Notes: generated by a model not told the origin, from the letters alone. 64,000 bases of DNA from Adineta vaga (GCA_021613535.1 CP075496.1:1488001-1552000); one strand, 5' to 3'. Numbered from the stretch's first letter, positions 3,970-63,336 are shown. Program-made: numbers and translations.

Positions 3970-4497
3970 CATTTAGAACAAACTTTCTTGCTCTTTTTCT
4001 TCTTCTTTTTTTGTACAGTGCATGTTTATTTGAAGAGATAAAACAAAGGAAAATAAATACATATTGCAGTTTTCACTGAGTTCATCCTTTTCTTTTTCAT
4101 ACTTTAATTAGATAACAAAAAACAGAGAGAGATGTGAAGACCAGACAAAAATAACCAGTTTTTGCTTGATTAATAATAAAAAAAAGAACACAACTCTCAA
4201 AATACTTCTATTCTATTTAACATGTCTGCTTTACATCGTGACATTCAAATGATTCGAAAATTATGATTATTTTTAATAGGTCATATATATATAAATTATA
4301 AAACAATTACTAATGAGGATAAATTAGAACGATATATAATAATAGAAACTCTTTTCCTCGATTTTGAGAGTAATTATAGAAAAAGATACTTTTCTCTGTG
4401 TTGTTACTAATGAGTTGGGTACAGACGAATGACAAAATATATAAGTACTTAATAATGAAATTTTAGTTTTGTAAAAGAATATTTATTTAAATAAGTT

Positions 4498-5962
<1,465 letters not shown>

Positions 5963-45262: not shown

Positions 45263-45665
45263 TCTCTTTTTTCTTTAAACTTGTATTAATTTTAATTGAA
45301 AAACTGTTAAAGTAGCTTAAGAGGACAGAATAAATTGTCTAATGGCCAAAAGACGCAATCCGATTGATCGATACTTATCCAATGAAAAAAAACTCCATTT
45401 AATTCATATGATGTTGGTTGATGACGGGGCGTGATCAAATAAGCAGTTAGGAAATCAAAAGATACGTACGGAAAAAAATTCTATCTAATCTCATCGTTTC
45501 ATCAAAATAAAAGCCAATTAAGAATTCATTTTCAATATATAATGCCAACGGCATTGATTCAACAAATTGCCGTTTATTTACCATTGATGTTCGTAAATAA
45601 TTTATTTATTATTTTTTTTAAATCTTTTGTTATTGTTGTCTTTTTTTTATTTAGTTTCATTGTCC

Positions 45666-46583
45666 ATGGGCCAGTGTCTTGAAAAAGTTCCTTCTGAGAG
45701 ACGATTAATGTCACATAATAATCATCCAAATCAGCAATCAATTTCAACTAAACACGTGAAGAAAAAAGCGAAACAAGACGCAACTGAACAACAATCCAAT
45801 CATCTCCGTCATTCATATAGACAAATGAATCCAACAACGACAACATTAGAACCTCGTCGTGATTTACCTTTACATAAAATTCCTGAACTTCTCGCTAAAA
45901 TTACTGGAACATTATCATCAACATTATCATCATCAGGAATAGATACAAAACAAAATTCATCATCGAATGCAATCATAAATTTATCCGATCGCCGTTTACA
46001 ATTATTTAAATATTATTCCGATGATGATGAATTAATGTCTGTTGATGGAATTCTTCGTTTTTGTAAAGATTTATCCTTTGAACCTGATTGTTATGAAGTT
46101 CTTTTATTCTGTTTTGTATGTCGTGCTAAACAAATGTATTCGTTAACAAAAGAAGAATTTCTTCGTGGCTTAAAAACACTTGGAAATCATGTTGATAATC
46201 TCTTAGATATTCGAACAGCATTATCAAATTATAATATTTCACCATATGAAAATGAATTTTATACATGGACGTATCATTATGGTTTAATTGATGGTCAACG
46301 TTGTGTTACAACAGCAAATGCTATTAGTCTATGGCGTTTATATTATTTAAAAGGTATTGAAAAACCGTTGATATTGAATCAATGGTTAAATTATTTAGAA
46401 GAAGATATTCATAATGAAATTCCGAAATCTATAACATGTGATACATGGACAATATTTCCTCAATTTGCAAAATTTATTCAGTTCAATGGCTACGAAGCTT
46501 ACGATGATAATGAAGCATGGCCATGTTTATTCGATGGATTTGTTGAACATCAATTAGAACAACAAAAACAAAAAAAAACATAA
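45666..46583 (+). CDS. DCUN1D3: DCN1-like protein 3 (neddylation co-E3), intronless
   Basis: N-terminal MGQC acylation motif, PONY domain DGILRFCKDL, DTW..F..F, AYDDNEAWPCLFDGFVE. Confidence 0.85.
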   Translation: MGQCLEKVPSERRLMSHNNHPNQQSISTKHVKKKAKQDATEQQSNHLRHSYRQMNPTTTTLEPRRDLPLHKIPELLAKITGTLSSTLSSSGIDTKQNSSSNAIINLSDRRLQLFKYYSDDDELMSVDGILRFCKDLSFEPDCYEVLLFCFVCRAKQMYSLTKEEFLRGLKTLGNHVDNLLDIRTALSNYNISPYENEFYTWTYHYGLIDGQRCVTTANAISLWRLYYLKGIEKPLILNQWLNYLEEDIHNEIPKSITCDTWTIFPQFAKFIQFNGYEAYDDNEAWPCLFDGFVEHQLEQQKQKKT

Positions 46584-47204
46584 AATTGATCAGAAATTAT
46601 TTACAAGGATCGATTTTTGCACTTCTGTTGTATTCAAAAAAAAAACAATAAATAAAATAAACAAATAAAAATGAATTTCTTTTCTCGTTTTATTTTCTTC
46701 TTCCTTTTTTCTTTTTAGATTTCATGAGTATCGATGAGCATGTCTTTCTCTTTCTCTCTCTGATCTATTTAATAGAAAACATAATTGATTATTTCGGTTT
46801 TATTTACAAGTCGAAAATACCCTCGAGAATAGAAGAGAACTCGATCGATTGGTTCAATTAAAAAATGAATTTTTGTTTTTTCTCGATAGATGACAGTTAG
46901 TGTATCTATCTGTAAGTTGATCTTCTATTCACAAATCTGTAAAAAAAGAAGAAGAAGAAAAAAAATTGTCGACATTTTTCTTTTCCGTAGCGTCGATTTT
47001 ACTAATGACTCAGAAAAAGTCGATGTCAATTTCGAGGAAAAAGAAAAGAAATAATCAATTATTCGGTAGAACTTGTTTATATGTGTACCAGACATCAGCT
47101 CGCATTTGATGATTCATACTAAATATTTCGAGGTATAAATGACTTCTTTTCTTCATTGTAGATGTAGCTTGTGTTTTTTATTTCCTAATACAATCATTCA
47201 GATA

Positions 47205-48815
47205 ATGTCAAACAAAAGTAAGTTGAATAAAATAATTTAAATTTCTATTGGCTTATTTAGTGAACAAGCCATCTAGCAAATTAAATCTGAAACCATTGGA
47301 TTTTGATGCTTCAGCAAATTCTACTAAAGTAAAACAACAACAACCTGAACCAGCAAATATAAATCCCGTCCCGTATGTAATCATAATACTAAACATTTTC
47401 TTTTATTTCACTTGAAGAATTCAATTCTAGTCGACAAGTTTCATCGGCATCAAGTCATCGTGATCTCAGTACTGGCAAACTCCACCTATCCGATTCCAAA
47501 GTTTGTATATCTTTCATTTAAAAGTAAAAGATCTTCTTTCTATTGAAATTCTTTTGCAGGTTTATAAATTTACATCCAATGATTTAATTGATCGCGGTGT
47601 TATTGGAGAAGGTAATTTTGGTATTGTATGCAAAATGGAACATGAAAAAAGTGGAACATTGATGGCTGTTAAAGTATTAAAGACTGATTTATTTGAAAAT
47701 TTGTCTTATTTTCATAATGAAATAATTTCTTTAGAGAATTCGTTCAACTGTTGATGAACGATGTCAAAAACAAATGCTCAATGAATTAGATATTGTTATG
47801 CGTGAAAACGCTTGTCCACATATTGTACAATTCTATGGTGCACTTTTTAAAGAAGGTGATTGTTGGATTTGTATGGAATTAATGGATACATCCTTGGATC
47901 GATTTTATAAATTTGTTTATCATAAACTTAATCAATCTATTCCAGAAAGTGTTCTCGCTTATATTACTCTTGCCGTAAGATTTATATGACAAATTATTTT
48001 TGATTATAGTTTCGTTCTTTTTTTAAATAGACTTTAGAAGCATTAGAATATATTAAATCAACATGGCATATCATTCATCGTGATGTTAAACCATCGAATA
48101 TTTTAGTTTCACGATCGACGATTAAACTTTGCGATTTTGGTATTAGTGGACAATTGATCGATTCAATTGCAAAAACACGCGATGCTGGTTGTCGACCATA
48201 TTTACCCGTAAGATTATTCAATCAACTCATAGAAAATAAGTTTTGTTTTGTCTGTCCTATATAGCCTGAACGTATTGATCCTTTACGAGCTACAAAAGAT
48301 GGTTATGATGTTCGATCCGATGTTTGGTCACTTGGTATAACAATTGTAAGTAAATGAACTATTGTCTTCGAAAAACCAAACAAAAATAAGAATTCATTTT
48401 TTTAGTATGAAATTTCTACGGGATATTTTCCATTTCGAGAATGGACATCAGTTTTTGACCAACTACAACAAATTGTTGAAGGTCCTCCTTTAAGATTAAC
48501 TGTTGATCGTCTTTCAGATAATTGCAAAGATTTTGTAAATACATGGTAATATAAAATTCAATTGATTTGTTTTGATAAAAAAAAAACCAATTAAATTGTT
48601 TTGTTTTTAGTTTAAATAAAGATGAAAATCAAAGACCAAAGTATAAAAAACTATTGGAACATCCATTTGTACGCAACGCTGATGGACAACAACAAGTAGA
48701 AAATACAGCGGCTTATCTCTCGGAAATTATTGATGGACTCTCAGAAAATATGGATACATTTGAAATGTATTATTATTTACCACCAAATGCTTCAGCATCA
48801 TCGAATAATCGATGA
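47205..48815 (+). CDS. MAP2K4: Dual-specificity MAP kinase kinase 4 (MKK4/SEK1)
   Basis: [12 protein letters not shown]|[62 protein letters not shown] (SIAKT activation loop). Confidence 0.93.
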
Positions 48816-49210
48816 CTAAACTGTGTTATCGAATGAATATTTCTTCTTCTTCTTCTTTTTTTTTTCTTCTTGATTATTTATTTCGATTTGATATCAATTC
48901 CAAAACAATCTTTATTTATTTCCTATGTTTTCTTCTTTCTGTGTGTAATTGGACAAGGAAAATATTTCTTTCTTTCTTTTTTTGGAAAAATACGTTACTC
49001 TCGCTAATTTCATTTTGATGTTGTCAATCTGTGGTTATTTTTTCGAATAGAACAATTCTTATTTTCACTTTTCTTGAGAAATTGTTGTTGTATTTGTATG
49101 AAAGTGATGTTTGAAAAGTATCTCGTGAAAAAAAAATATAAAATACACTAAGAACAAAACCAAAGTAATCTTACAGGACACATATAATGAAATCAAAACT
49201 AGATGTACGC

Positions 49211-49227
49211 GTTCTGCTGATCATCGT
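49211..49227. repeat. 17-bp inverted repeat, left member (likely transposon terminus)
   Basis: GTTCTGCTGATCATCGT is the exact reverse complement of 52552-52568. It is followed by GTTA. A degenerate relative lies near 49513-49530. Confidence 0.7.
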
Positions 49228-51067
49228 GTTAAAAAAGAAATTCAATGTGAAAATTGCTTTCGACAATAATTATCAAGTCACACATGAGATGGGTGAGTCA
49301 TAGGTTTTCATATCGCAAGTAAAAAATGATTAGATTTGACAATCGCTGCGATCTAGTTCAAAATTGGTTGAGCGTCATGTTTTTTCCATATATAAAATGA
49401 ATAATCAATTACGCACAGTCGATATGAATTTCTGTTCTTCGGAAATCGTGAGTCACGCATTTCAACTATATTTGACAACGTTGGTTTTCTATTACTTCAA
49501 AATGTGATCGGCGTGATGATCAGTAGAATCATTGAAGTTTTCTAGGTCAAACAATACGATCCTGTTGTGAATGTATACTACATTTTACGGGTATATATGC
49601 AATCTGCATTCATCGACCCAGGTTTAATTTTATAAGATGAAGAAATTCAACAATTGATAAATTTTGTTTCTCAGATTGTTTATTAATTTGTAGTTTTCTG
49701 ATAGATTATAGATATACGTTTAATAAATAGAACTGACTGTGAAATTCCAATGAATTTTTATCTCGTTTTACTTGGAGATGAATATATATTGCAATAATCC
49801 ATAAGACTTTAAGGATAATAGTTTATCCATGTACAACTTGTGACTGATATTCAACTGTTCAGTTATTTAAATTTTTAAATATGCAATTAGAAGAGTGATG
49901 GGGGCAAGGACTTAGTGAAGGTGTTGCGAATGATGTTGGGGCAACGGGAAGAATACTTGAAAGCTCGAATAGTCGAATTCGACTTTCACGTTTAAAACTA
50001 CTGTAATATTATGGAAAAAGTTATCAAACATGATTATTAGAAACATCTTTCAAATCGGATTCACTTCTGATGATATGTTCACGCATACTTTTTCAATATA
50101 GACAAGGAAGAGACAGAAAAACAACAACGGCAATCCATTAGTTGAAAATCTGTATAATCCTCATATCCTGTCTGCTTGATGTTGCATTACTAATGCATTT
50201 TCAAGAATGATCGTAAAAGTGACTTTTCTTGTAGCAAAACTGCCGATGAATAAGATAATATTCCATTAATTTTATCTGGAAAAAAACGGAAGTACGAAAT
50301 ATTCATTACTTAAAACTGTTATTGATCTTGATGATCTATCTACTTGATAAAAATAGTCTATAGAAATACATTTACTCATCCATGTCACTTACGTCACTAG
50401 AAATCTTTTCTAGGCATGTGATAATCTGCTGATTGAGTTATGAATTTGCACCTGATTTTTTTACGCATTTGTTTTTTTCTTCTTCATCTCCTATTTGATA
50501 ATCTAATTTCTGAATCATATATGTAGTTGACATGTAATTAAATTGAAGAAATAATTGACGAAGAATAGCATGTATTTTGTTGATGAATGATTCTTATAGT
50601 ATCTTCCTCATAAAACTTAATTACAAATGAAGATATATTTGAATAGAAAGGTAAGAAGGAAAAAAAGAAATTTCCCCAGAAGTAGTTCTTTTCTTAGTTA
50701 GATTTTAAGAGATTATCATCTCTTATTCATGCCCAATGTGATCTAGTGTCATCATTTCTCTTTTCATTTCTTTTCTTACTACACTCTTGATTAGTCGCAC
50801 ATAACTATTCATTTTGTAGACTTCGATTAGAAAGAGTAATTTTCTCTTCTTGTCGAATCTGATGGATGCTTTCTAACTGAGCAAATGTTATTTTGGAAAT
50901 AAAAATCATCGTTAGATAATTATATATTTTCCATTAATTTTACTCGAGCTAAGTATTAAATTTTAATGTAATAAAACTTTTGATAAATCCTATTATTATT
51001 TCACATGAACACACCCACTTTTACTACGAAGATCTTTTAGATACACATTTTATTATCTATAACCAGC

Positions 51068-52255
51068 ATGTCTTTGACAGAAGATCAGAAACAGATTCTC
51101 AAATCAACATCACCAATTTTCAAGGAACATGGCAAAGAAATCACCTCTATTCTTTACAAACACATGTTTGCTGTTCATCCTGAATTATTAGATATATTCA
51201 ATCGAACAAATCAAAAGAATGGAAAACAACCATTTGCTTTAGCAAATACAATGTATCTTGCCATCGAAAATATCGATAATTTAGAAGTGCTTATGCCTCA
51301 AATCTTATTGATTGCTCATAAACATCGTGCATCAACTGTTCGTCCAGAACATTATCCCATCGTCGGAAAATATTTACTTGTTGCCATCGATGAATTTCTC
51401 GGTGGAATGGGTGATCCCAGCATTTTGAATGCTTGGGCAGCTGCCTACAAAATTATTACAGATGTTTTTATCGGTATTGAAAAAAAACTGTATGCTGAAC
51501 TTGGTGATAAACAAGAACAAGGTTTCCTTCCATTTAAAATCACCAAAAAAGAAACTATTGCAAGTGGACCAGTTGTGGCTTTTACATTCGAACGCACGGA
51601 TGAAGGTAAATTACCTGGTTATCATACCGGACAATATCTCACTCTTCGAATTAAGAAGAAAGGTTGTTTACATATTCGACATTACAGCCTTATTCAACCT
51701 TTCGATGGCAAAACTTATCGTATTGCAATAAAGCAAGAAAATGATCATGAACCAAAAGGTATTGTTTCCAGTGCATTGATTAACGAATATCGCGTTGGGG
51801 ATATAGTTCCATTAAGTTTACCAGCTGGAACATTTGGATTAGTCAAGAATGCAAAACATCATTTATTTATTGCAGGTGGTATTGGTATTACAGTTTTATC
51901 AGCAATGATACAAGATTTACATAAACAAGATAAATCTGATCTTGTTACATTGATTCATTGTGTAATTCGTGAAGATCAAGCAGTTTTCGCTGATGAAATG
52001 CGTGAAATTCTATCGGAAAACCAATATTATTTACTTATTCAAAGTAGACATCTTTTACAAGAAACGATTAAAAAAGTAATTAGATCAGAAACAGATGTTT
52101 ATCTTTGTGGTTCAGATGTATTTATGAACAAAGTTGAAGAATATTTATCACAATATAATCATCCAACATCTCAAATTCATGTTGAAGCGTATCAACCATC
52201 ACTCAGTTTAATTAAAGATGCAGTTAAAAATCATCCTACACCAAATCCATTATGA
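51068..52255 (+). CDS. hmp: Flavohemoglobin (NO dioxygenase) copy 1, intronless
   Basis: Globin domain (TyrB10 LYKH, PheCD1 DIFN, GlnE7, HisF8 AHKHRA, PEHYPIVG), FAD-binding GQYL/RHYSL/GIVS, NAD-binding AGGIGIT and YLCG. Confidence 0.95.
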   Translation: MSLTEDQKQILKSTSPIFKEHGKEITSILYKHMFAVHPELLDIFNRTNQKNGKQPFALANTMYLAIENIDNLEVLMPQILLIAHKHRASTVRPEHYPIVGKYLLVAIDEFLGGMGDPSILNAWAAAYKIITDVFIGIEKKLYAELGDKQEQGFLPFKITKKETIASGPVVAFTFERTDEGKLPGYHTGQYLTLRIKKKGCLHIRHYSLIQPFDGKTYRIAIKQENDHEPKGIVSSALINEYRVGDIVPLSLPAGTFGLVKNAKHHLFIAGGIGITVLSAMIQDLHKQDKSDLVTLIHCVIREDQAVFADEMREILSENQYYLLIQSRHLLQETIKKVIRSETDVYLCGSDVFMNKVEEYLSQYNHPTSQIHVEAYQPSLSLIKDAVKNHPTPNPL

Positions 52256-52465
52256 ATGTAAACAACGAATATAATCTGAATTAATTTTTCTTCTTGTAAG
52301 AAATCTTTTATTGTAAATATGATCGAACAATGTACTTGTTTTTCGTCTTTGTGCTGTGTAAGTCGATAGTTCGCCAATAAACGTTCTATGTACAGAAGAA
52401 ACCTCAACTAAATATTTATTTATTGTTTTGTAATTGGAAAAATAATTCAAAAATATTCATTCCAA

Positions 52466-52520
52466 AGGGTGTGGGTGTGGACAAAGTACAAAGAAATACT
52501 ACCACCCACACTTTCATCCT
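52466..52520. repeat. Short palindromic MITE-like element
   Basis: AGGGTGTGGGTGTGG...CCACCCACACTTTCATCCT. Same design and size as 25714-25769. Confidence 0.5.
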
Positions 52521-52551
52521 CAAGATGAAAATTTTCAAAAGTATACTCTTG

Positions 52552-52568
52552 ACGATGATCAGCAGAAC
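52552..52568. repeat. 17-bp inverted repeat, right member (likely left end of the Tc1/mariner-type relic)
   Basis: ACGATGATCAGCAGAAC is the reverse complement of 49211-49227. Confidence 0.7.
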
Positions 52569-53521
52569 CTGCAAGAGTTGAGGTTTATGAAAATGTTTCA
52601 GTTATGACTTGTATTGTTTGATATAATTAATTGTGCTTTATCAAGAAGAAATTCTAATTACGCGATTCTTACCCTTGCTCGCTAAACTGAAACTAAATGC
52701 TGTGTTTATTAATATCCCTTTTCAAATGTATACTAGCTTTCGAAAAATATACATCAAACGATTCGTGATATAGTAGAATATGACCATTGGCGTTGTCAAA
52801 GGCGATGTAAATATGCAATTGCGTATTTCATTGAGAGGTTTGTGTATCGAAATTTGATTCTGTTACAATTTTTATATTTAATTTGGGATTATCTTCTATA
52901 TTTTCCTTCGATCTGAATCACGTAGACAATTTCTGACTTTTTCTGTTCGTTATGAATTGATGGAAGAAAACAAAATCACAGAAATGTAAGTGCTGAATAC
53001 TACACATATATTTTTCTTTTTGTTCCTCCCTCGTATTTTCTTATAACGGTTAATCATTGTTGAAGTAGAAAAAGGAAGCTCGATCAAAGAAAATCTCGCC
53101 CATCTGTCTGAAATTTCTCATTACGCTACTGCCGACAACATGATCTGCAATATGACGGAGCCGATTATAATCCATCCTCAACATATATCACTAAACCTTT
53201 GATTGATTTTAATTATGCGTCTTTGCAATAAATTTAAATTAAACATGTGAAAATTAAGAACGTGATGAGCATACGATGCAAAAGTCTGGAAAAAAGCACA
53301 CGTGCATAAACATTTGATAGGTTGTTCATATCTCTTTTTAACGATATATAGTAAAGCTTCACTGTTTATTCATTGAAAAACTGACAGGCGGAGACAGAGA
53401 AGCACGATTACAACGATTCCACAACTTCTATTATTACTTTGCTGATAATTCCTTAAAAACTACAATTAATTACTTTACAAAGTACAATCTATTTATAAAC
53501 TACCAAAGATCTGTCTTGAAA

Positions 53522-53870
53522 TGGTTGGTCATATCATCTAAAGGAGTTTTTGATGCTTATGTCCACAAAAGCGAACGAGCTAATAACCAAGAAATATACT
53601 TGAATGAATATATTAATAAAAGACTGTTATCATTTATCATCAACTATCATTCTGATGGAAATTATTTGTTTTGACCTTATTTAGCCACTACGCATTGTTC
53701 AAGATCATTCACATGAAGCAAATGTATAGTATATGCAAATAATTGGGAAGCAAAAGATATCGAACAGTTGACTAGAAGAATAAAGAATAAGAAACAAAAG
53801 AATTTGATCAATACATGTTGCAAGGAATGATGCAGGGTGTTTGAAAGAAGAATTTAAAAAAACTTAGCTA
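53522..53870 (+). mobile_element. Degenerate IS630/Tc1/mariner-type transposase fragment (pseudogene)
   Basis: The frame from 53522 reads WLVISSKGVFDAYVHKSERANNQEIYLNEYINKRLLSFIINYHSDGNYLF*PYLATTH (a decayed FWPDLA..H second-Asp motif). After a deletion come NNWEAKDIEQLTRRIK and, frameshifted, LQGMMQGV, typical of the C-terminus. Confidence 0.72.
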
Positions 53871-55159
53871 TCCACGTTCTAAAATGGCTGAACTACAGAG
53901 CTCAACATTTTCCCAAAGACTTGTATCATGTGTTCTTAAGAGCATCTGTCAAAGTAGAAATATTATTTTTAATCTTTTAAATCAGATTTAATTTGTTTTA
54001 GCTTCTAAAACCTAATAAAATATTTGAATTGCAGAATTTCCAGATTCATTACTGATGATACCAGGTAGACACAGTTTTTTCAACCTAAATAAGGAAGATG
54101 AAGAGAGGAAAAAAATTTTAAACCATTAGTCAAACATCAGTATAACGCTCATCTCCTCTCTACTCGATGTAACATTACTAATGCGTTTCCAACAAAAATG
54201 ATGAAAGTAGATGCATAGAGAGATATTATGAGATAATATCATCGCACTATGAAACTGTTGTTTACCCCTTCTTTTTTTAACATTTTATTTCGACATACTA
54301 CCTGTAGTTGACTTATCATTAGAGCAAAAGAATAAATGGAGAGAGAATAGTAGCATACATTTTATTGGTGAATAGTTGTTAGTATCTTTCTCCGTAAAAC
54401 TAAATTTCTAGTGAAAATTACTTTTGAACAGAGAGTTAAAAAAAACAAAGTAATATTTTCAGCCGTAGTTCTTCTCGTAACTGAATGTATAAGGATTATC
54501 ATCGCTAATTTCTTACTAAATATCAATTCTCGTGTCATTATTTCTCCTTTCATTTCTTTTCCTAGTACATTTGGGATTAGTCGTACATTTCTATTGAACT
54601 TGTAGAATTCGATTCGAGCAATTAATTTTAACTTGTTTTCAACTCAAACGATTGCGTTGTAACAAAATAAACATGTGACCTTTGAAACAGAAATCATCGA
54701 TACATATTTATCTACTTTCCATCAACACTTTTGATTAGTACAACTTTTACAGGCAAACATTTTGTAACATTTTTTATTTTCCATATATCTCAGCGTAAGT
54801 CAACAATGATATTTTCAAAAGCACCCTAAGAATGCGACTAAGAGATCTCATTGACTTGTTTCAATAGTCTTCGATGTACTCGAAATGGAAAACCTACACG
54901 ACGTTGCCGTATTTCATTCATTTCAATTTTAGAAAAACCGACTGAGATTTCTTGAAAGTACTCATGTAAAACTCTTCAATCTGCATCTTTTTTGCAATAT
55001 TCAACACGTTATCATTGACACACGTTGAGATATTTGCGCAATAAAAACAGTTGCAAAACTTTCGCTTCACCTGCTCTGAATGAATTTATCATTCCGTAAG
55101 ATCACACTCATTTTAACAAGAAGATCTTGTAGATACAGATTTCATTATTTATAACCAGC

Positions 55160-56347
55160 ATGTCTTTGACAGAAGATCAGAAACAGATTCTCAAATCAAC
55201 ATCACCAATTTTCAAGGAACATGGCAAAGAAATCACCTCTATTCTTTACAAACATATTTTTTCTAATCATCCCGAATTATTAGATATATTCAATCGAACA
55301 AATCAAAAGAATGGAACACAGCCGCTTGCTTTAGCAAATACAATATATCTTGCCATCGAAAATATCGATAATTTAGAAGTACTTATGCCTCAAATCTTAT
55401 TGATTGCTCATAAACATCGTGCATCAACTGTTCGTCCAGAACATTATCCAATCGTCGGAAAATATTTACTTGTTGCCATCGATGAATTTCTCGGTGGAAT
55501 GAGTGATCCCAGTATTTTGAATGCTTGGGCAGCTGCTTACAAAATCCTTGCAGATACGTTTATCGATATTGAAAAAAAACTGTATGCTGAACTTGGTGAT
55601 AAACAAGAACAAGGTTTCCTTCCATTTAAAATCACCAAAAAAGAAACTATTGCAGGTGGACCAGTTGTGGCTTTTACACTGAAACGAAATGATGAAGGTG
55701 AATTACACGATTATCATTCTGGACAATATCTTACTCTTCAAATTAAGAAGCAGGGTTGTTTACATATTCGACATTACAGCCTTATTCAACCTTTCGATGG
55801 CAAAACTTATCGTATTGCAATAAAGCAAGAAAATGATCATGAACCAAAAGGTATTGTTTCCAATGCATTGATTAATGAGTATAGCGTTGGGGATAAAATT
55901 ACATTAAGTTTACCAGCTGGAACATTTGGATTAGTTAAGGATGCAAAGCATCATTTATTCATTGCAGGTGGTATTGGTATTACAGTTTTATCAGCAATGA
56001 TACAAGATTTACATAAACAAGATAAATCTGATCTTGTTACATTGATTCATTGTGTAATTCGTGAAGATCAAGCAGTTTTTGCTGATGAAATGCGTGAAAT
56101 TCTATCGGAAAACCAATATTATTTACTTATTCAAAGTAAACATCTTTTACAAGAAACGATTGAAAAAGTAATTAGATCAGAAACAGATGTTTATCTTTGT
56201 GGTTCAGATGTATTAATGAACAAAGTTGAAGAATATTTATCACAATGTAATCATCCAACATCTCAAATTCATGTCGAAACATTTCAACCATCACTCAGTT
56301 TAGTTAAAAATGGCGTGAAAAATCAATCTGCTACAAAACCAATATGA
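55160..56347 (+). CDS. hmp: Flavohemoglobin copy 2, intronless
   Basis: Same motifs as copy 1. About 42 of 395 residues differ from copy 1 by my manual count. Confidence 0.95.
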   Translation: MSLTEDQKQILKSTSPIFKEHGKEITSILYKHIFSNHPELLDIFNRTNQKNGTQPLALANTIYLAIENIDNLEVLMPQILLIAHKHRASTVRPEHYPIVGKYLLVAIDEFLGGMSDPSILNAWAAAYKILADTFIDIEKKLYAELGDKQEQGFLPFKITKKETIAGGPVVAFTLKRNDEGELHDYHSGQYLTLQIKKQGCLHIRHYSLIQPFDGKTYRIAIKQENDHEPKGIVSNALINEYSVGDKITLSLPAGTFGLVKDAKHHLFIAGGIGITVLSAMIQDLHKQDKSDLVTLIHCVIREDQAVFADEMREILSENQYYLLIQSKHLLQETIEKVIRSETDVYLCGSDVLMNKVEEYLSQCNHPTSQIHVETFQPSLSLVKNGVKNQSATKPI

Positions 56348-57405
56348 GTACGTAATATAACATACACTGCTTTATTTGTCGTTTCTTAAGAACCCTTTTA
56401 TTCTAAAGCTTATCTAAAAATATATCTGCTTTTTGTCTATATATTATGTAAGTCAATAGTTCGGTAATAAACGTTTGATGTATCAAAAACAAAATCAAGA
56501 ACTTTTATTACAAAACTCAGGCAGTATATGAGCTCAATATTTTGTAATCAGACAAATGATTTGTAACTTCTAATTTCAAAGGTCAAAGATTCTTTTAGAA
56601 CAAGAAAGACAAACTGGTGAATGAATCTTTATCTTCTAATTTCTAATACAATATGAATGATTTGAAAGACAGCATGGAATATCGAAAAGTCTTTTTTTTA
56701 ATCAGATTCCGGAAAATATTCTTCAGCTAGTTTAATTGTCTTATGGAACTATTCAAGTCAGAAAAACATCCTTCTACTTCAACTCAATCCGATCGCCAAT
56801 GTAAAAAAAGGTCTAATTCATTTCCTTTTCTTTTTCTATTTCGTCAATAATTAACTTCAAAGGGAAATTCATTATTCATCGTAAGATGAATAAATCCTTT
56901 GATGCATTAAATCACCCATATTTTTATCACTTATAATGTACTTTTCAAAAATGTAAGTCATTATATCCTCAAAACTCTTTTTCAATTGGAATAATTTAGT
57001 CGAAATAAGATAAAAACAGAACTTTTTCTTTAAAGACAAGATCAATAGTTGCAAAGAATTGCAATGTCACGCTCTAAAAATTCTCATTATTATAATCATG
57101 TTTCTCCCTTGATCATTTCAATTTTTTTTATATTGTTTTTTTTTTCAACAATGCATTCATCATTGTCATATCGTCTCTCTATGACTTCCAGGAATTTATT
57201 CTGATCATAATATAAATATCTTATTTGAAAAGTTCTCAGCCGAGATAATAATGATAAGATGCAAAACGCTCATCATTCCTAATTACATTATTCGAGATAT
57301 TTTTTCCGTTTTTGATTCTACTAATAATATCTGTTCGAATGGTTTTACTCAATTACGTCTAGAAGACAACAATCTACTCATTTTGTTTTTTTTTAGATTT
57401 TGATC

Positions 57406-58596
57406 ATGTCGTTAACTGAAGAACAAAAACAAATTGTGAAATCTACAGCACCAGTTCTACGAGAAAATGGAAAAGAGATAACTTCGATTTTCTATAAAAC
57501 TCTTTTTGAAAATCATCCAGAATTATTGAATTTATTTAATCAAACAAATCAAAAAATTGGTACTCAACCATTAGCATTAGCAAATACGGTTTATTTTGCT
57601 GCAGAAAATATTGATAATTTAGCAGTTCTTATGCCGCAAGTACGACATATTTCACATAAACATCGTGCTTTAACTGTTCAACCTGAACATTATCCCATCG
57701 TTGGTAAATATTTACTTCTAGCTGTTGCGCAATTTTTAGGAGATAAAGCAACAGACGAGATTTTAAATGCATGGTCAGCTGCTTACAATATCATATCTTC
57801 TATATTTATTAATGTAGAAAAAGAATTATATGCGAAATTTAATCAAGATCCACGTGATCAAGGATTTATTCCATTCACAATTGTGAAAAAAGAACGAATT
57901 GCAAATGGACCTATCGTTGCTCTTGCCTTTCAACGAGTCGATGGTGGAAAGATGTATAAACATCATCCGGGACAATATTTAACGATTCGAATAAAAAAAG
58001 GAAATTATTATCATAATCGACATTATAGTTTAACTCAACCATTCAATGGTAAATCGTATCATATTGCAATAAAACAAGCAAATGATCATGAACTTAAAGG
58101 TCTTGTTTCCAATGAAGTTCTTAATCATTATAGAAAAGGAGATAAAATTCTTGCTACTTTTCCAGCAGGTACATTTCATTTAGTTGAAAATGCAAAGTAT
58201 CATTTATTTATTGCTGGTGGTATTGGTATTACTGTTTTTTCTTCGTTAATTCAAGAATTATATAAAAATGGTAAAGCAAACACAACAACATTAATTCATT
58301 GTGTACCAACAGAAGGACATGCGGCTTTTGCTCAACAGATGCGTTCGATTTTACCACGAAATCAATATCATTTATTAGTACAAGGTAAACATCTTTTACA
58401 AGATCTTATTCGAAATAGTATCAAACCGAATACACATGTTTATCTATGTGGTTCTATACCGTTGATAAATAAAGTTGAAGATTATCTTGCTGAATATGAA
58501 CTTCCATCATCACAGATTCATACTGAAGCATTTCGACCAATACTTGGTTCCATTAAAAATGCAGTTAAAAATCAATCAAATACAAAATCATTATGA
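57406..58596 (+). CDS. hmp: Flavohemoglobin copy 3 (more divergent), intronless CDS
   Basis: MSLTEEQKQIVKSTAPVL, ITSIFYK, SHKHRALTVQPEHYPIVG, PGQYL, RHYSL, GLVSN, AGGIGIT, YLCG. Confidence 0.95.
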   Translation: MSLTEEQKQIVKSTAPVLRENGKEITSIFYKTLFENHPELLNLFNQTNQKIGTQPLALANTVYFAAENIDNLAVLMPQVRHISHKHRALTVQPEHYPIVGKYLLLAVAQFLGDKATDEILNAWSAAYNIISSIFINVEKELYAKFNQDPRDQGFIPFTIVKKERIANGPIVALAFQRVDGGKMYKHHPGQYLTIRIKKGNYYHNRHYSLTQPFNGKSYHIAIKQANDHELKGLVSNEVLNHYRKGDKILATFPAGTFHLVENAKYHLFIAGGIGITVFSSLIQELYKNGKANTTTLIHCVPTEGHAAFAQQMRSILPRNQYHLLVQGKHLLQDLIRNSIKPNTHVYLCGSIPLINKVEDYLAEYELPSSQIHTEAFRPILGSIKNAVKNQSNTKSL

Positions 58597-58918
58597 AATA
58601 AAGGAAGAAAAAACCCATAGACCTCATAGATTATTTATTTATTGTCATTATCTTTCTGTCGTCTGTTTTCGTGACAAATAAATTCGCCATTATATTGGAT
58701 GCTTAATCATAATCTAAGAAATCAAACTACCCTCTCAATCCGATCGATAGACACGATAAGAAGCTATTCAAATGATAATTTCGAAACTCGAAATGTCAAA
58801 TTCATTTTTTGTTCCAAATATTCTTTGCGCCAATTTATGTTTTTAAATGATCGATTAATAATTTCTTCCGTTCAGATCATCTTTTCATTTCATTTCCTTT
58901 CTAAATAAATATCTAATC

Positions 58919-60020
58919 ATGCTCGAGAATCAAAAATCGTTGACAACATTACAACAAGTAACATCCTCCAATGATGGAGCAACAAATTGTTCAAAATGTG
59001 GTGAAAAAATTCTGAATATAATGACAGCAGATGAAAATCGAGTTTATCATCCACATTGTTTCAATTGTTCTGATTGTGGAAAAACTTTAGCCGGAGGATT
59101 TTTCTACAAATCAAAACATCTCAAATCTGATTTAACATTAAGAAATAGTTTAACAGAACCAATTCGTTTTTGTGAAAGTTGCTATAAAAAAATTGCACCA
59201 AAATGGTATGTAGTATTGAATACGAGAGAGGGGAAAATGATTGAAAAGTTTAGTGCTCGATGTCAGAATATTATTGAAGCATCATCGATTGTTTGGGAAG
59301 ATAAAAAATTTCATGAATCATGTTTTACTTGTTGTGGAATTGATAAAAATGGTGTTGAATGTCGAAAGGTTTGATTTGTAAATAAATCTCTTTTTTTTAT
59401 AGAAGAAAATTTTCTAGCCAATGAAAGATGAGTCAGTTTATCCATTGAACAATAAATGGTATTGCAAAACTTGTTTTAATCAATTAAATACTGGTATTAG
59501 TGCAGCTTCAAGAGATATTCTCAGTCAAAAATGTCAGAAATGTTATCGAGAATTTGCTCCCGGATCATTAGTTAGTGAATGTAAGTTTGTTCAATTATGA
59601 TCGATTTCAATTGATTTGTTCCTTAAGACAAAGGAGATTATTATCATCCGACATGTTTTATTTGTTCACAATGTAATTCTTCAATTGCGAGTAAATCATT
59701 TTATCATCAAGCAAAATCCGATGATCGACAGTCCGATATGAAATTTCTCTGTGAAAATTGTCATATTAAAAATGCACAAGAATGCGCCGAATGTAAAACG
59801 AAAATTGTCAGTGGTGAAGCAAGTAAGTTCATCTTGTCTTTATTTAATGGATCATTCAATTTCTCTTCTAGTCGGCTTCGAAGGCAAACAATATCATCAA
59901 ATCTGCTTCATTTGTCAAAATTGTAAGAATGAAATCGGTACTGCACATTTTTTCAAAACAAAAGATGGAAAATATATTTGTCAACATTGTTCACAACAAC
60001 AGGATATTCAAACAAAATAA
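58919..60020 (+). CDS. LIM-only protein with four LIM domains (paxillin/FHL-like), 5 exons
   Basis: Four CxxC...HxxCFxCxxC...CxxC units across exons at about 58919-59204, 59254-59369, 59418-59581, 59629-59822 and 59872-60020. Confidence 0.82.
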
Positions 60021-60521
60021 AAACAGCATTAAAGATTTTGTTCTATTGAATGAAATCCTTGACATCTTCTCTCTTTCTCTTGTCTTTCCAGTTCATTACT
60101 AATAATGTTTCTATATGAATGAGTAGAAACACAAACTAATACTCATTATAAATATGTATCAATACGATAATGTCATGGCCTATATTCATCGTCTTGAAAG
60201 ATCAGAACATAAGCGATATCTTCTTCCTATTCATATTATTGTTTCGATAAGTGTAATGACATTATCTCTTCTCTCTCATTTAACAATCGTTCTTATGAAT
60301 ATAAACATAAAGTATCAAGAGTGAGAAAAAAACGGAAAAATAATAAATATATTTTCTATAAAAACAAACAAACAAACAAACAAATCTTTTTCTTTTTATA
60401 CAAATGACCAATGAAAAAAAAAGTGTTCAGTAAAACGAAGCTATCGACGAGAATTGTTTGTCATAAATAAAACAGAACCGGTATGGCGATGCACCATCAG
60501 ATAGATTTGACGGATGAAATC

Positions 60522-63336
60522 TTATCGTCGAATAAACTCAATTAAAAGCAAGAGAATCATGAAGAGAATCGAAGATTTCATTGAATTTCCATTAGATAAT
60601 GAAATTTTATTTTCATTAATAAAATAATCTTCAATTAATACTGATTTCTCTTGTCGAATGATAAAATTTTCTAATAGAGTTAATGTTACATTCAGATATT
60701 GATCTGTCGTTTGTTTTGAATAAGGTAGAAAATAATTTGTTATCGTCTAGAAGAGAAACAAACGATTCAATTACATCATTAAGATCATATTGAGATATTC
60801 TTACAGGCAAAAGATCAATAGAAATAAGTTCGATATGACTTGGCAGCTGTTCTATACGTAATCGATATAGAATATCCGAATGATCATTAGCTAAAGATAT
60901 GATTAGTTATTTTGATCAAAAGCAAAATGATTGAGATTACTTACAAATCGAATGCTTAGTTTGCCAAGAGAAATGAATACCTGAAATATTTCTTGTTGTG
61001 ATTAGATTAAGTGGTGATAAGATTGACTGAATAGCTTGTTCATCTGTTTGACATGATGGTCGAATACTTCCAGAGATATGAATTGATTCACAAGAACTAA
61101 CATTAAAATAGATTTGAAAAGATTTTTTCAAACGTAATTTGGGAACTATTGGTTTGATATTTAATACATATGTACAATTGAAACGTAAATCATATAATTC
61201 AAATGTATTGTCTTTTGTTGATGCATCACGTCGATAACAACAAGAAAGTACATCGGAATAACATTGAGTTTCAATCCAATGTAAATCATAATGTTCAAGA
61301 CGATAATCGGCTATTTTATTCCACGAAAGATTCGTTTTAATTAAACCATTGATAAAATATGGTTCGGACATACGAAAATTCTTTAGAGTAAATAATTCGT
61401 CTTCATAATTAAACTTCAATGATATTGGTAGACTTGTCTGAAGAGGACTGCCATCAGAACTGATTAATGAACGAATCTATACAATAGAGAGAGAGAGAGA
61501 GAAACAAAAACGATACTTGACTTTTGTTCAAGTAACTACTTACTGTGAATATATAAGACATGTGCGTCGACAAATATGGTATGGTGAATTCTAATGGATA
61601 TAATGATGATGAAACATCAATAGTAGTAACAAATGATGATGGATCATTCTGTGCTTCCCAGGAAATCTATAAAAGAAATGAATAAAATTATTAAAGAAAA
61701 CAAAGATATATATTTGCTGAACAAACTTGATATCCATGAATTGAAAAATTTGGTCTTTCCCAACTAAGAGTAACGTTTAGTTTTGTATTTGATATCAATT
61801 GAAAATCTTTAATAACAAAATTTAGAGGTGATGCGATTGTTGGTAAAGATTTATGTGAATGATTTTCTTGAAAAAAAGAAAAAGAAAATAATCAATTTCT
61901 ATTATTCATCTTTTCAATTATTCTTACTTGAATTTGAACTTAAACGAAATGGTTTTGTCGCTGTTGAAAATGTCGAAAATCCTTGCCGTGTAACTGTAGC
62001 TACACGAAATGTATACCATCGATTATCTCGTTGAATATTTCTTATAATAGCTTTTGTTTGTGAAACTTCTTCTTTGACAAAACCCCATTTTGATATTGTG
62101 TCTTGTTGATAGAGATCAACTTTTGGTAATGTCCATTGAGCTTCAATAACATAGAAAATTGGTTCAATATTATTCATTCCATTGGAATTCCATTTTAATC
62201 GAACAGTTCGTCGACTTTTTCTTTCTATAGCCGTCACATTCGTCGGTTGAGGTATTGTTTCTAGATGAAAAAACATATTCACGTATGTTTTTTTTTCTCA
62301 CATTTATCATTATCTCGCGTGCAATACAAGGCTAATTATGAACAGCTTTTCTTTCCCTTTCAATATGTCAATCATTATTTTATGATGGCATCCGAGACAC
62401 CTGTATGAATCGATCAACTTACCGAAACAATCATTCGCGGGTGAACATGACGATGATGATGATTGACAATCATCTAAAAAGGAATGAGAGTTAATCCGTT
62501 TCTTCGATCTTTATTCCTCACGAGACATCAAATGTCATTTACATTGTTATTTGAAACAATTCAATTTTCTTACCTGTTAAACAATTCGATTGTTGTTCAT
62601 AAAGCTTTTGGACAAAACCACAACTTCTTTGACATTCACCATTTTGTAACTAAGATTAAGAAAAAGAATATAATTTTCATTAACTAAAGTTAATCTATTT
62701 ATTTGTTTCATATCTGCTTTCTTCTATTTCATTCTATCATGAGTGTATATATATATATATACACATATATACAGTTGTCGACATCAAGCGTTCATCACAA
62801 TGAACATATCATCTTTCTTAACTTTGTTTTTTACCATCGATAATGATCTCGACAGATACGAGGTCATGCTTTCGATCAGAGATAGGCAAAAAGAAAGAAT
62901 AACTTACTGTCGAACAGATTGCTTGACAACTTTGGTCATTGGACAGGAGAAGTGGCGGATCCAAATCACATGGGAGTAGACACTAGAATAGACATTAGAA
63001 AAAAACAAGTACAAACAGATCAACTCGTTTGCATACTGATGAGCTAAAAAGAAGAAGGAGAAAAAGAAAATCAGCCGATTTCCGCCTTTAGTCTATGCAA
63101 GTTTGTCGGTCAGTGAGATTTTTTTTCCTTCATAATTCAATTAGTTAGACATTAGATTCTCTATTTCTCATTAGCTCTATATTGTTAGTCGAGTTATCAT
63201 ATGAGACAATCATACGTTTTTCAATCTCCTCCTTCTTTCTATTCATTCAGGGCAATTTACTTACCGAGCTACATGTGATAAGGCGTGGACAACGTTCCCA
63301 GATAGATCGCCATGGTAAAGTTAGTGCATGTGTCGT
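60522..63336 (-). CDS. ANOS1: Anosmin-1/KAL-1-like (Cys-rich box, reduced WAP, FN3 repeats, hydrophobic C-terminus); 5' end not found in window
   Basis: Cys box WERCPRLITCSS|CLLPC...CQAICST|...GECQRSCGFV. First FN3 VRLKWNS...IEPIFYVIEAQW...WYTFRVATVTRQG matches anosmin IEPVIYVVQRRW. Further FN3 exons follow. Ends SSILFMILLLLIEFIRR*. Confidence 0.75.

Follow-up and report, generated by a model that had tools for sequence, protein, structure and literature searches.

In reference bacteria such as E. coli and Ralstonia eutropha, flavohemoglobin (FHb) genes are regulated by NsrR, FNR or NorR, and bdelloid rotifers are known to carry thousands of foreign genes. Every type I FHb tested so far is a nitric oxide (NO) dioxygenase (PMC6950321, PMC3820574). 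Reviews assign the family to bacteria, fungi and protists; the distribution given in PMC6950321 comprises bacteria, fungi, protozoa and insect trypanosomes, with no animal named, and the same source describes the FHb of Malassezia as a 'single-protein metabolic module' acquired from Corynebacterium (Wisecaver et al. 2016, as cited in PMC6950321). Here we analyzed a 64,000-nucleotide (nt) stretch of the bdelloid Adineta vaga genome (GCA_021613535.1, CP075496.1; the window, from whose first letter positions are counted unless a contig is named) that holds three FHb genes in tandem. A sequence-only reading of the window had proposed a horizontally acquired and then amplified NO-detoxification system in a probable bdelloid. 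Our analysis confirmed the observation and supported the interpretation: the bdelloid FHbs are a real, well-integrated, ancient foreign gene family. Judging from sequence comparison, it is very likely that the array consists of three functional type I FHb genes, each encoding globin, FAD (flavin adenine dinucleotide) and NAD(P)H domains in one polypeptide, and that the family goes back to a single acquisition from Bacilli by a stem bdelloid.

Public databases already label Adineta and Rotaria proteins automatically as 'nitric oxide dioxygenase'. Our literature search found no work linking FHb or NO dioxygenase with bdelloids, rotifers or Adineta, the 3,318 flavoHbs of Wisecaver et al. 2016 being left unchecked, and the co-occurrences it returned were reference-list coincidences or concerned a Philodina sensor globin only; for a bdelloid, globin reviews name no globin other than a sensor globin. 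In the bdelloid papers examined (main texts and some supplements), nitric oxide, globin and flavohemoglobin went unmentioned.

Three Flavohemoglobin Genes in Tandem

The three full-length, intronless globin-FAD-NAD open reading frames (ORFs) claimed in the sequence-only reading are present exactly where it placed them, all uninterrupted in the ORF listing:

51068–52255, plus strand: FHb copy 1, an ORF of 395 amino acids (aa) in one exon, with Pfam matches to Globin, FAD_binding_6 and NAD_binding_1 and a match to NF009805 at E 9.3e-96
55160–56347, plus strand: FHb copy 2, an ORF of 395 aa, 89% (aa) and 94% (nt) identical to copy 1
57406–58596, plus strand: FHb copy 3, an ORF of 396 aa, an ancient paralogue with 61% aa identity to copy 1

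The ORF of copy 3 spans 57400–58596 and opens at TTG, its first ATG at 57406 giving the 396 aa. Pfam searches matched the N-terminal 3-on-3 globin domain (PF00042) in all three copies at E 1e-10 to 1e-13 and, for the C-terminal FNR-like part, NAD_binding_1 (PF00175) likewise in all three and FAD_binding_6 (PF00970) in copies 1 and 2. The NCBIfam family NF009805, 'NO-inducible flavohemoprotein', aligned over nearly its full length with each copy, at about E 1e-96 to 1e-98.

Structural comparison was in agreement with these assignments. The top matches in the PDB by sequence were flavohemoglobins, headed by yeast 4g1b (3.8e-70, 240 bits) and followed by Ralstonia 1cqx and E. coli 1gvh (203 and 183 bits for these two). 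An AlphaFold (AF2) model of copy 1 had a mean pLDDT of 88.8 and a pTM of 0.86, with helices at residues 5–143 and disorder confined to the last ten residues. Superimposed by Foldseek over about 400 columns, it gave template-modelling (TM) scores of 0.88 to yeast 4g1v, 0.84 to 1gvh and 0.75 to 1cqx.

Conserved Residues and Motifs

Residues were compared in alignments with 25 and with 40 FHbs, using the numbering of copy 1. All three copies retain the heme pocket, namely TyrB10 (Y30), PheCD1 (F44), GlnE7 (Q54), LeuE11 (L58) and HisF8 (H86), together with TyrG5 (Y96) and GluH23 (E138), which form the proximal triad with HisF8; these residues are invariant or nearly so among the 40 FHbs. The earlier statement that TyrB10, PheCD1, GlnE7 and HisF8 are intact thus holds for every copy. 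On the flavin and nucleotide side, the RxYS motif (RHYS), the GxxS motif (G-I-V-S), the glycine-rich loop, the CG motif and an aromatic Tyr or Phe at position 375 are present.

Three shared oddities had been taken as signs of divergence after a single transfer: GITV, a C-terminal E-x-[YF]-[QR]-P and a short tail. All three exist. Among the aligned FHbs, GITV (GITA in the chromosome-3 paralogue) is found in bdelloids only, as is the C-terminal tail of 12 residues, with the consensus A-V-K-N-Q-S-x-T-K-S-L. The sequence E-A-F-Q-P followed by L-S-L-I-K is common to bdelloids and Listeria sensu lato, and is therefore older than the transfer or tied to it, so that for this motif a post-transfer origin does not stand. 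A further bdelloid state is CGS where Listeria has CGP, and Yhb1 of yeast also has CGS. The tail was considered as a peroxisomal targeting signal (PTS1) and rejected, as its endings KSL, KAL, KPI and NPL do not fit the S/A/C - K/R/H - L/M consensus.

Within the bdelloid FHb clade, one subclade known from metagenome contigs of at most 17 kb (P0122, P0119, P0106, P0110 and P0116) has lost cofactor motifs: RxYS has Gly in place of Arg, the sequence of the nucleotide loop is G-G-S-S-I-A-A and Lys replaces the C-terminal Glu, while the proximal His is kept. It may represent a derived paralogue with altered function.

Relatives and Phylogenetic Position

A word search returned more than 100 bdelloid proteins at 50–77% identity, from A. 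steineri, A. ricciae, A. vaga, at least five Rotaria species and many metagenome contigs. After the bdelloids it gave only proteins of Listeria sensu lato (49–52% identity), and every named protein among the best 120 matches was from a bdelloid or Listeria. An exhaustive search of 1.84 billion representatives yielded 7,013 matches. Its best score, 598 bits, belonged to a rotifer representative; the next full-length score was 332 bits, from a member of the bdelloid clade, and the one after it 284. No intermediate cluster between the bdelloid-clade scores and the others appeared in this search, and the drop from 598 to 332 to 284 bits therefore indicates that no other lineage is close. Among species-level bacterial genomes, the best matches were L. 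rocourtiae, L. riparia and L. booriae (52%), followed by Lysinibacillus and other Bacillales (36–42%).

One multi-globin protein ranked directly after the 598-bit representative, its score being a sum over 14 domains. Giant proteins with 12–14 globin domains score high against the rotifer globin domain; they include P0121 (2461 aa) and P0320 (3326 aa), both from Joint Genome Institute (JGI) metagenomes, and P0123 (1842 aa; sea urchin XP_011670837), with per-domain identities of 33% and 28% quoted for the group. They are unusual and unconnected to the bdelloid FHbs.

Three trees placed the bdelloid FHbs beside those of Listeria sensu lato. Support is given below for the Listeria plus bdelloid group and for bdelloid monophyly; the 40-row tree was computed with 1000 ultrafast bootstrap (UFBoot) and SH-aLRT (approximate likelihood-ratio test) replicates:

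FastTree, 172 rows: Listeria plus bdelloids 100; bdelloid monophyly 89
IQ-TREE quick, LG+C20+F+G4 with posterior mean site frequencies (PMSF), 75 rows: Listeria plus bdelloids 100, on a stem of 0.59; bdelloid monophyly 98
IQ-TREE LG+F+G4, 40 rows, SH-aLRT/UFBoot: Listeria plus bdelloids 100/100; bdelloid monophyly 99/100

The Listeria FHbs are themselves monophyletic (99 in the 75-row tree, 100/100 in the 40-row tree). The pair lies among FHbs of Bacilli, including Mammaliicoccus, Staphylococcus aureus, Salinicoccus, Exiguobacterium, Bacillaceae and Caryophanaceae. A horizontal origin, with a single transfer followed by duplication, is thus sustained by a monophyletic bdelloid clade (SH-aLRT 98–99, UFBoot 100) inside the Bacilli radiation. 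Neither the searches nor the maximum-likelihood trees revealed a broad, vertically inherited animal clade, monogononts and other animals not having been searched genome by genome.

A fungal donor could be suggested by the yeast structures, which lead the PDB matches both by sequence (240 against 203 and 183 bits) and by fold (TM 0.88), and by the many fungal genes found in bdelloids. We consider this origin highly improbable. The yeast Yhb1-type protein (Zygotorulaspora P0138) clusters with staphylococcal FHbs in every tree, not with the rotifers, and a 100/100 branch parts it from the Listeria plus bdelloid clade; identity to yeast is 36–37%, against 49–53% to Listeria. Yeast heads the PDB list because no Listeria-type FHb structure has been solved.

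Host Linkage and Transcription

The assembly comprises 100,824,805 bp in six contigs, and the window occupies 1,488,001–1,552,000 of contig 4 (15.2 Mb). As had been noted, the array sits between intron-bearing metazoan genes. Assessed exon by exon, the host neighbors are as follows:

45627–46583, plus strand: Cullin_binding (DCN1-like) host exon, Pfam 1.1e-20, orthologous in a contig of another bdelloid (L088; 85.7% nt identity)
47420–48824, plus strand: MKK4-like protein-kinase gene in split exons, with Pkinase pieces at 47503–47751 and 47774–47986
58919–60020, plus strand: LIM-domain gene directly downstream of the array, with LIM Pfam matches and 79% aa identity in L088

The top PDB match of the kinase exon is human MKK4 (MAP2K4; 3aln, 1.3e-27). 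The LIM gene contains a 47-nt GT..AG intron (59581–59627) whose spliced joint is seen in a contig of run X18, and an fn3 ORF was found by Pfam on the downstream side. ORFs in the 2.9-kb and 1-kb spacers had no Pfam match, and no further gene or mobile element was recognized there. The host-like, AT-rich composition described earlier was also recovered: GC content at third codon positions (GC3) is 0.11–0.18 in the FHb genes and 0.15–0.17 in two neighboring host exons.

Across nine studies, 20 public runs contain the stretch in whole or in part. Over 54700–60600, all 30 bins are covered by DNA runs of 2013 and 2022. A contig from 2013 (58456–59119) joins the end of copy 3 to the LIM ORF, and one from 2022 (56649–58740) spans the spacer and copy 3, so that independent DNA runs connect the array with its metazoan neighbor. 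The public DNA runs also show dense single-base differences from the assembly over 54971–60413, for example a cluster at 58741–58790 where contigs break, a pattern suggestive of differences between alleles or strains along the array.

Two RNA-type runs cover coding parts only, with zero coverage of the spacer at 56473–57260. Contigs on copy 3 extend over 57398–58169 and 57913–58706, the latter ending 110 nt beyond the stop codon. Those placed on copy 2 extend over 55172–55432 and 55583–55810, their assignment to copy 1 or copy 2 being uncertain at 94% identity; in one of the contigs on copy 2, a loose tail agrees at 28 of 30 letters with the 3' end of copy 1. These presumed RNA runs contain transcripts of the copy 1/copy 2 type, and the spliced joint in the LIM gene shows that one of the two runs includes spliced RNA.

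Intronless genes of bacterial type could simply be contaminant bacterial DNA or a misassembly. We give this explanation next to no chance: it is excluded by the intron-bearing neighbors, the host-like GC3, the DNA-run coverage with its bridge from copy 3 into the LIM gene, the coding-only coverage of the RNA-type runs and the gene order conserved in another bdelloid. It would also have to account for a position inside a 15.2-Mb contig, for paralogues on two other chromosomes, one of them within a duplicated block, and for the more than 100 homologues in several bdelloid species.

Age and History of the Array

A. vaga has at least five FHb loci. The paralogue on contig 3 is intact (52% identity). 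The one on contig 1 (10334755–10335935, minus strand; loci L005/L006) translates piecewise to the A. vaga protein I4U23_003317, so that the organism, earlier called a probable bdelloid, had been rightly recognized. The assembly shows a one-base shift in the reading frame of this copy, near codon 121. The gene model of I4U23_003317 (382 aa) crosses the shift by an artificial intron and thereby loses some of the G helix. Either the copy is a pseudogene of recent origin or the assembly is wrong at this point.

The bdelloid FHbs fall into at least six paralogue clades, each with both Adineta and Rotaria, and the duplications are therefore older than the split of these genera. In the 40-row tree, copies 1 and 2 form a sister pair, as do copy 3 and A. 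steineri P0065 (99.8/100). Synonymous divergence (dS) agrees, at 0.12 between copies 1 and 2 and about 0.97 between either of them and copy 3; the corresponding ratios of nonsynonymous to synonymous divergence (dN/dS) are 0.42 and 0.28. The FHb genes are under purifying selection, and the array is no recent amplification: close similarity is confined to copies 1 and 2, and copy 3 is a paralogue of ancient origin. Two segments record the relationship of this pair:

50993–52392, plus strand: high-identity core of 1.4 kb, 90.8% identical (blastn, nt) to 55086–56482
50058–50937, plus strand: upstream remnants of an older copy 1/2 tandem duplication, about 71% identical to 54043–54725

The core extends beyond the coding region by about 75 nt on its 5' side and about 137 nt on its 3' side, both non-coding. 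A core of 90.8% identity that includes non-coding ends, an upstream identity of about 71% and a dS of 0.12 fit an older tandem duplication that was later homogenized, and the core is probably a gene-conversion tract between copies 1 and 2.

The 26-kb contig L088 is collinear with 46279–60997 of the window. Its order is Cullin-binding gene (85.7% nt), MKK4 (78% nt; one exon 96% aa), three FHbs and LIM (78.5% nt, 79% aa). Copies 1 and 2 best match the second FHb of L088 (76.3%) and copy 3 the third (76.7%), while the first (4451–5671, of the P0093 type, 406 aa) belongs to a paralogue lineage without an orthologue in A. vaga. Since A. vaga lacks the P0093 type and has two genes of the second type, the composition of the array turns over and its position remains fixed.

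On contig 1, a Cullin-binding paralogue (10339300–10339905, 54% identical) lies 3.4 kb from the FHb copy, in conserved order and orientation. Only this gene recurs there, and no paralogue of the LIM gene was found next to the chromosome-1 FHb copy. The block of Cullin-binding and FHb genes indicates that the locus predates the bdelloid genome duplication; judged by this gene order and by the paralogue lineages shared with Rotaria, the transfer is old and the gene was present before that event.

Donor and Direction of Transfer

A close FHb orthologue, 79–99% identical to that of L. rocourtiae, was found in 10 of 38 Listeriaceae species genomes, which are the largest (3.2–3.5 Mb). Three others have an FHb of 42% identity that falls in the staphylococcal/yeast clade (99), the copy of one further genome is broken and the remaining 24 lack an FHb. 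Listeriaceae thus hold two unrelated FHb types, one rotifer-like and one staphylococcal-like. The FHb copy of G009 contains four stop codons, and the rotifer-like gene of G032 is in two pieces. A search of 400 sampled Bacilli genomes with the Listeria-type protein gave many FHbs of 44–50% identity, which marks that protein as a divergent but ordinary FHb of Bacilli.

The simplest account is a single transfer to a stem bdelloid, the donor being a Bacilli lineage close to the origin of the Listeria gene. The acquired gene would then have fully taken on the base composition of its host (GC 0.31–0.33 in the bdelloid FHb genes, 0.41 in the Listeria gene, as in the latter's own flanks) and duplicated in tandem. 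Today this FHb subtype is found, among bacteria, in one subclade of Listeria sensu lato only. The array of A. vaga comprises the ancient copy 3 and, as a younger pair probably kept alike by gene conversion, copies 1 and 2.

Two points tell against this polarity: the sister relation in the trees leaves the direction of transfer unfixed, and the Listeria-type gene is present in only 10 of the 38 Listeriaceae, with the FHbs of three others elsewhere in the tree. Such a patchy distribution could reflect a reverse or two-step transfer, from an unknown Bacilli donor to a bdelloid and on to the Listeria subclade, or a shared unsampled donor, and as the bdelloid genes are intronless a transfer back into bacteria is mechanically possible. 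If the FHb of Listeria sensu lato came from an early bdelloid, by a back-transfer from animal to bacterium, bdelloids would have supplied this FHb subtype and not merely received it. We regard both the back-transfer and the wider set of such histories as distinctly unlikely. Two inter-domain transfers would be needed where one suffices; Listeria retains the general bacterial GITP and CGP, for which bdelloids have derived states; the GC content of its gene equals that of the flanks; its FHb is no orphan, given the relatives at 44–50% in many Bacilli; and Listeria lies outside the bdelloid crown (98–99/100).

Proposed Function

From their conserved residues, and from the established mechanism of Hmp, FHP and Yhb1 (PMC6950321, PMC3820574), the three FHbs of the array are predicted to be NO dioxygenases. 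NAD(P)H would reduce FAD, and FAD would reduce the heme iron. Heme-bound O2 would be held by TyrB10 and GlnE7, and the oxy-heme would convert NO to nitrate, aided by the proximal triad HisF8-GluH23-TyrG5. The proteins begin directly at the globin A helix, as in bacterial FHbs, with no N-terminal extension, which suggests that the enzymes are probably cytosolic.

In wet moss and soil, they would likely protect against NO released by microbes or food bacteria or formed by nitrite chemistry. A six-frame, exon-by-exon search of the whole genome found no match to the NO synthase oxygenase domain (PF02898), with control genomes matching. If that holds, the NO to be removed would be mainly external, coming from denitrifying or nitrifying microbes, ingested bacteria, pathogens or nitrite, and A. 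vaga would be an animal with a family of NO-removing enzymes and without a canonical NO synthase.

Several observations speak against an array of fully functional FHbs. The Pro of the GxGxxP motif is Val in all three copies (GITV), and the Gly of the C-terminal FGP, beside the aromatic residue, is Gln or Arg in the bdelloid copies. Copy 3 falls short of E 0.001 for Pfam FAD_binding_6; it nonetheless aligns to positions 2–394 of 399 of NF009805. The NF009805 scores (321.2, 326.5 and 328.3 bits) lie below the curated equivalog cut-off of 432, and the copies are homologues of that family, not members of it under the NCBI equivalog rule. The RNA evidence consists of assembled contigs from runs that are presumed RNA, in which copies 1 and 2 are not safely separable.

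The two substitutions and the sub-threshold scores could mean that these FHbs are no longer NO dioxygenases and have other tasks instead, such as buffering or sensing O2, reducing peroxides or lipid hydroperoxides, or acting as general NAD(P)H oxidoreductases. Such a change would concern function only and is compatible with the origin proposed above. It would suit dN/dS ratios of 0.28–0.42, relaxed for a housekeeping enzyme, the failure to find an NO synthase domain, which leaves an internal NO source not evident, and the existence of at least six old paralogues, which invite specialization. We nevertheless hold a loss of NO-dioxygenase activity to be unlikely, though worth keeping in view, as all three copies retain the residues linked to NO dioxygenation in Hmp, FHP and Yhb1 (TyrB10, GlnE7, LeuE11, PheCD1 and the HisF8-TyrG5-GluH23 triad), the structure model gives the complete three-domain fold at high confidence and all type I FHbs tested are NO dioxygenases (PMC6950321, PMC3820574).

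Comparison with Known Flavohemoglobins

The finding is incremental in that bdelloid gene transfer is well documented and the proteins already bear automatic labels. What the array adds is an animal lineage with a whole FHb family, under purifying selection since before the genome duplication, in which A. vaga has at least five loci and bdelloids as a group have six or more old lineages. It offers a concrete, readily assayed example of foreign genes extending bdelloid stress biochemistry, with a possible link to nitrosative stress in wet moss and soil that is strengthened by the lack of a match to the NO synthase domain. For an old transfer, so tight and exclusive a link with one Listeria subclade is a donor signal of unusual specificity.

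The reference NO dioxygenases, E. coli Hmp (1gvh) and Ralstonia eutropha FHP (1cqx), show full-length homology to the bdelloid FHbs (183–203 bits, TM 0.75–0.84, about 32% identity), and all their catalytic and cofactor residues align. Yhb1 of S. cerevisiae (4g1b/4g1v) shares the three-domain layout, a similar length and the heme-pocket residues, and is the best solved match (E 3.8e-70 by sequence; TM 0.88 and 37% identity by fold). It is likewise a eukaryotic FHb related to those of Bacilli and has the CGS state in common with bdelloids, but it branches with staphylococcal FHbs, lacks the 12-residue tail and keeps F-G-P.

The nearest non-rotifer kin are the uncharacterized FHbs of Listeria sensu lato (L. 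rocourtiae, riparia, booriae, grandensis, cornellensis, weihenstephanensis and newyorkensis), which resemble the bdelloid proteins in identity (49–53%), in E-A-F-Q-P...LSLIK and in an equally short loop before RxYS. They differ in their length of 378 aa without a tail, in GITP, CGP and RQYS, and in a GC content of 0.41 against 0.31–0.33. The Malassezia FHb (6o0a) is also a case of transfer from a bacterium to a eukaryote, but there the recipient was a fungus and the donor an actinobacterium, and identity to the bdelloid proteins is 24%. Compared with it, the bdelloid case has an animal as recipient and a far larger expansion of paralogues.

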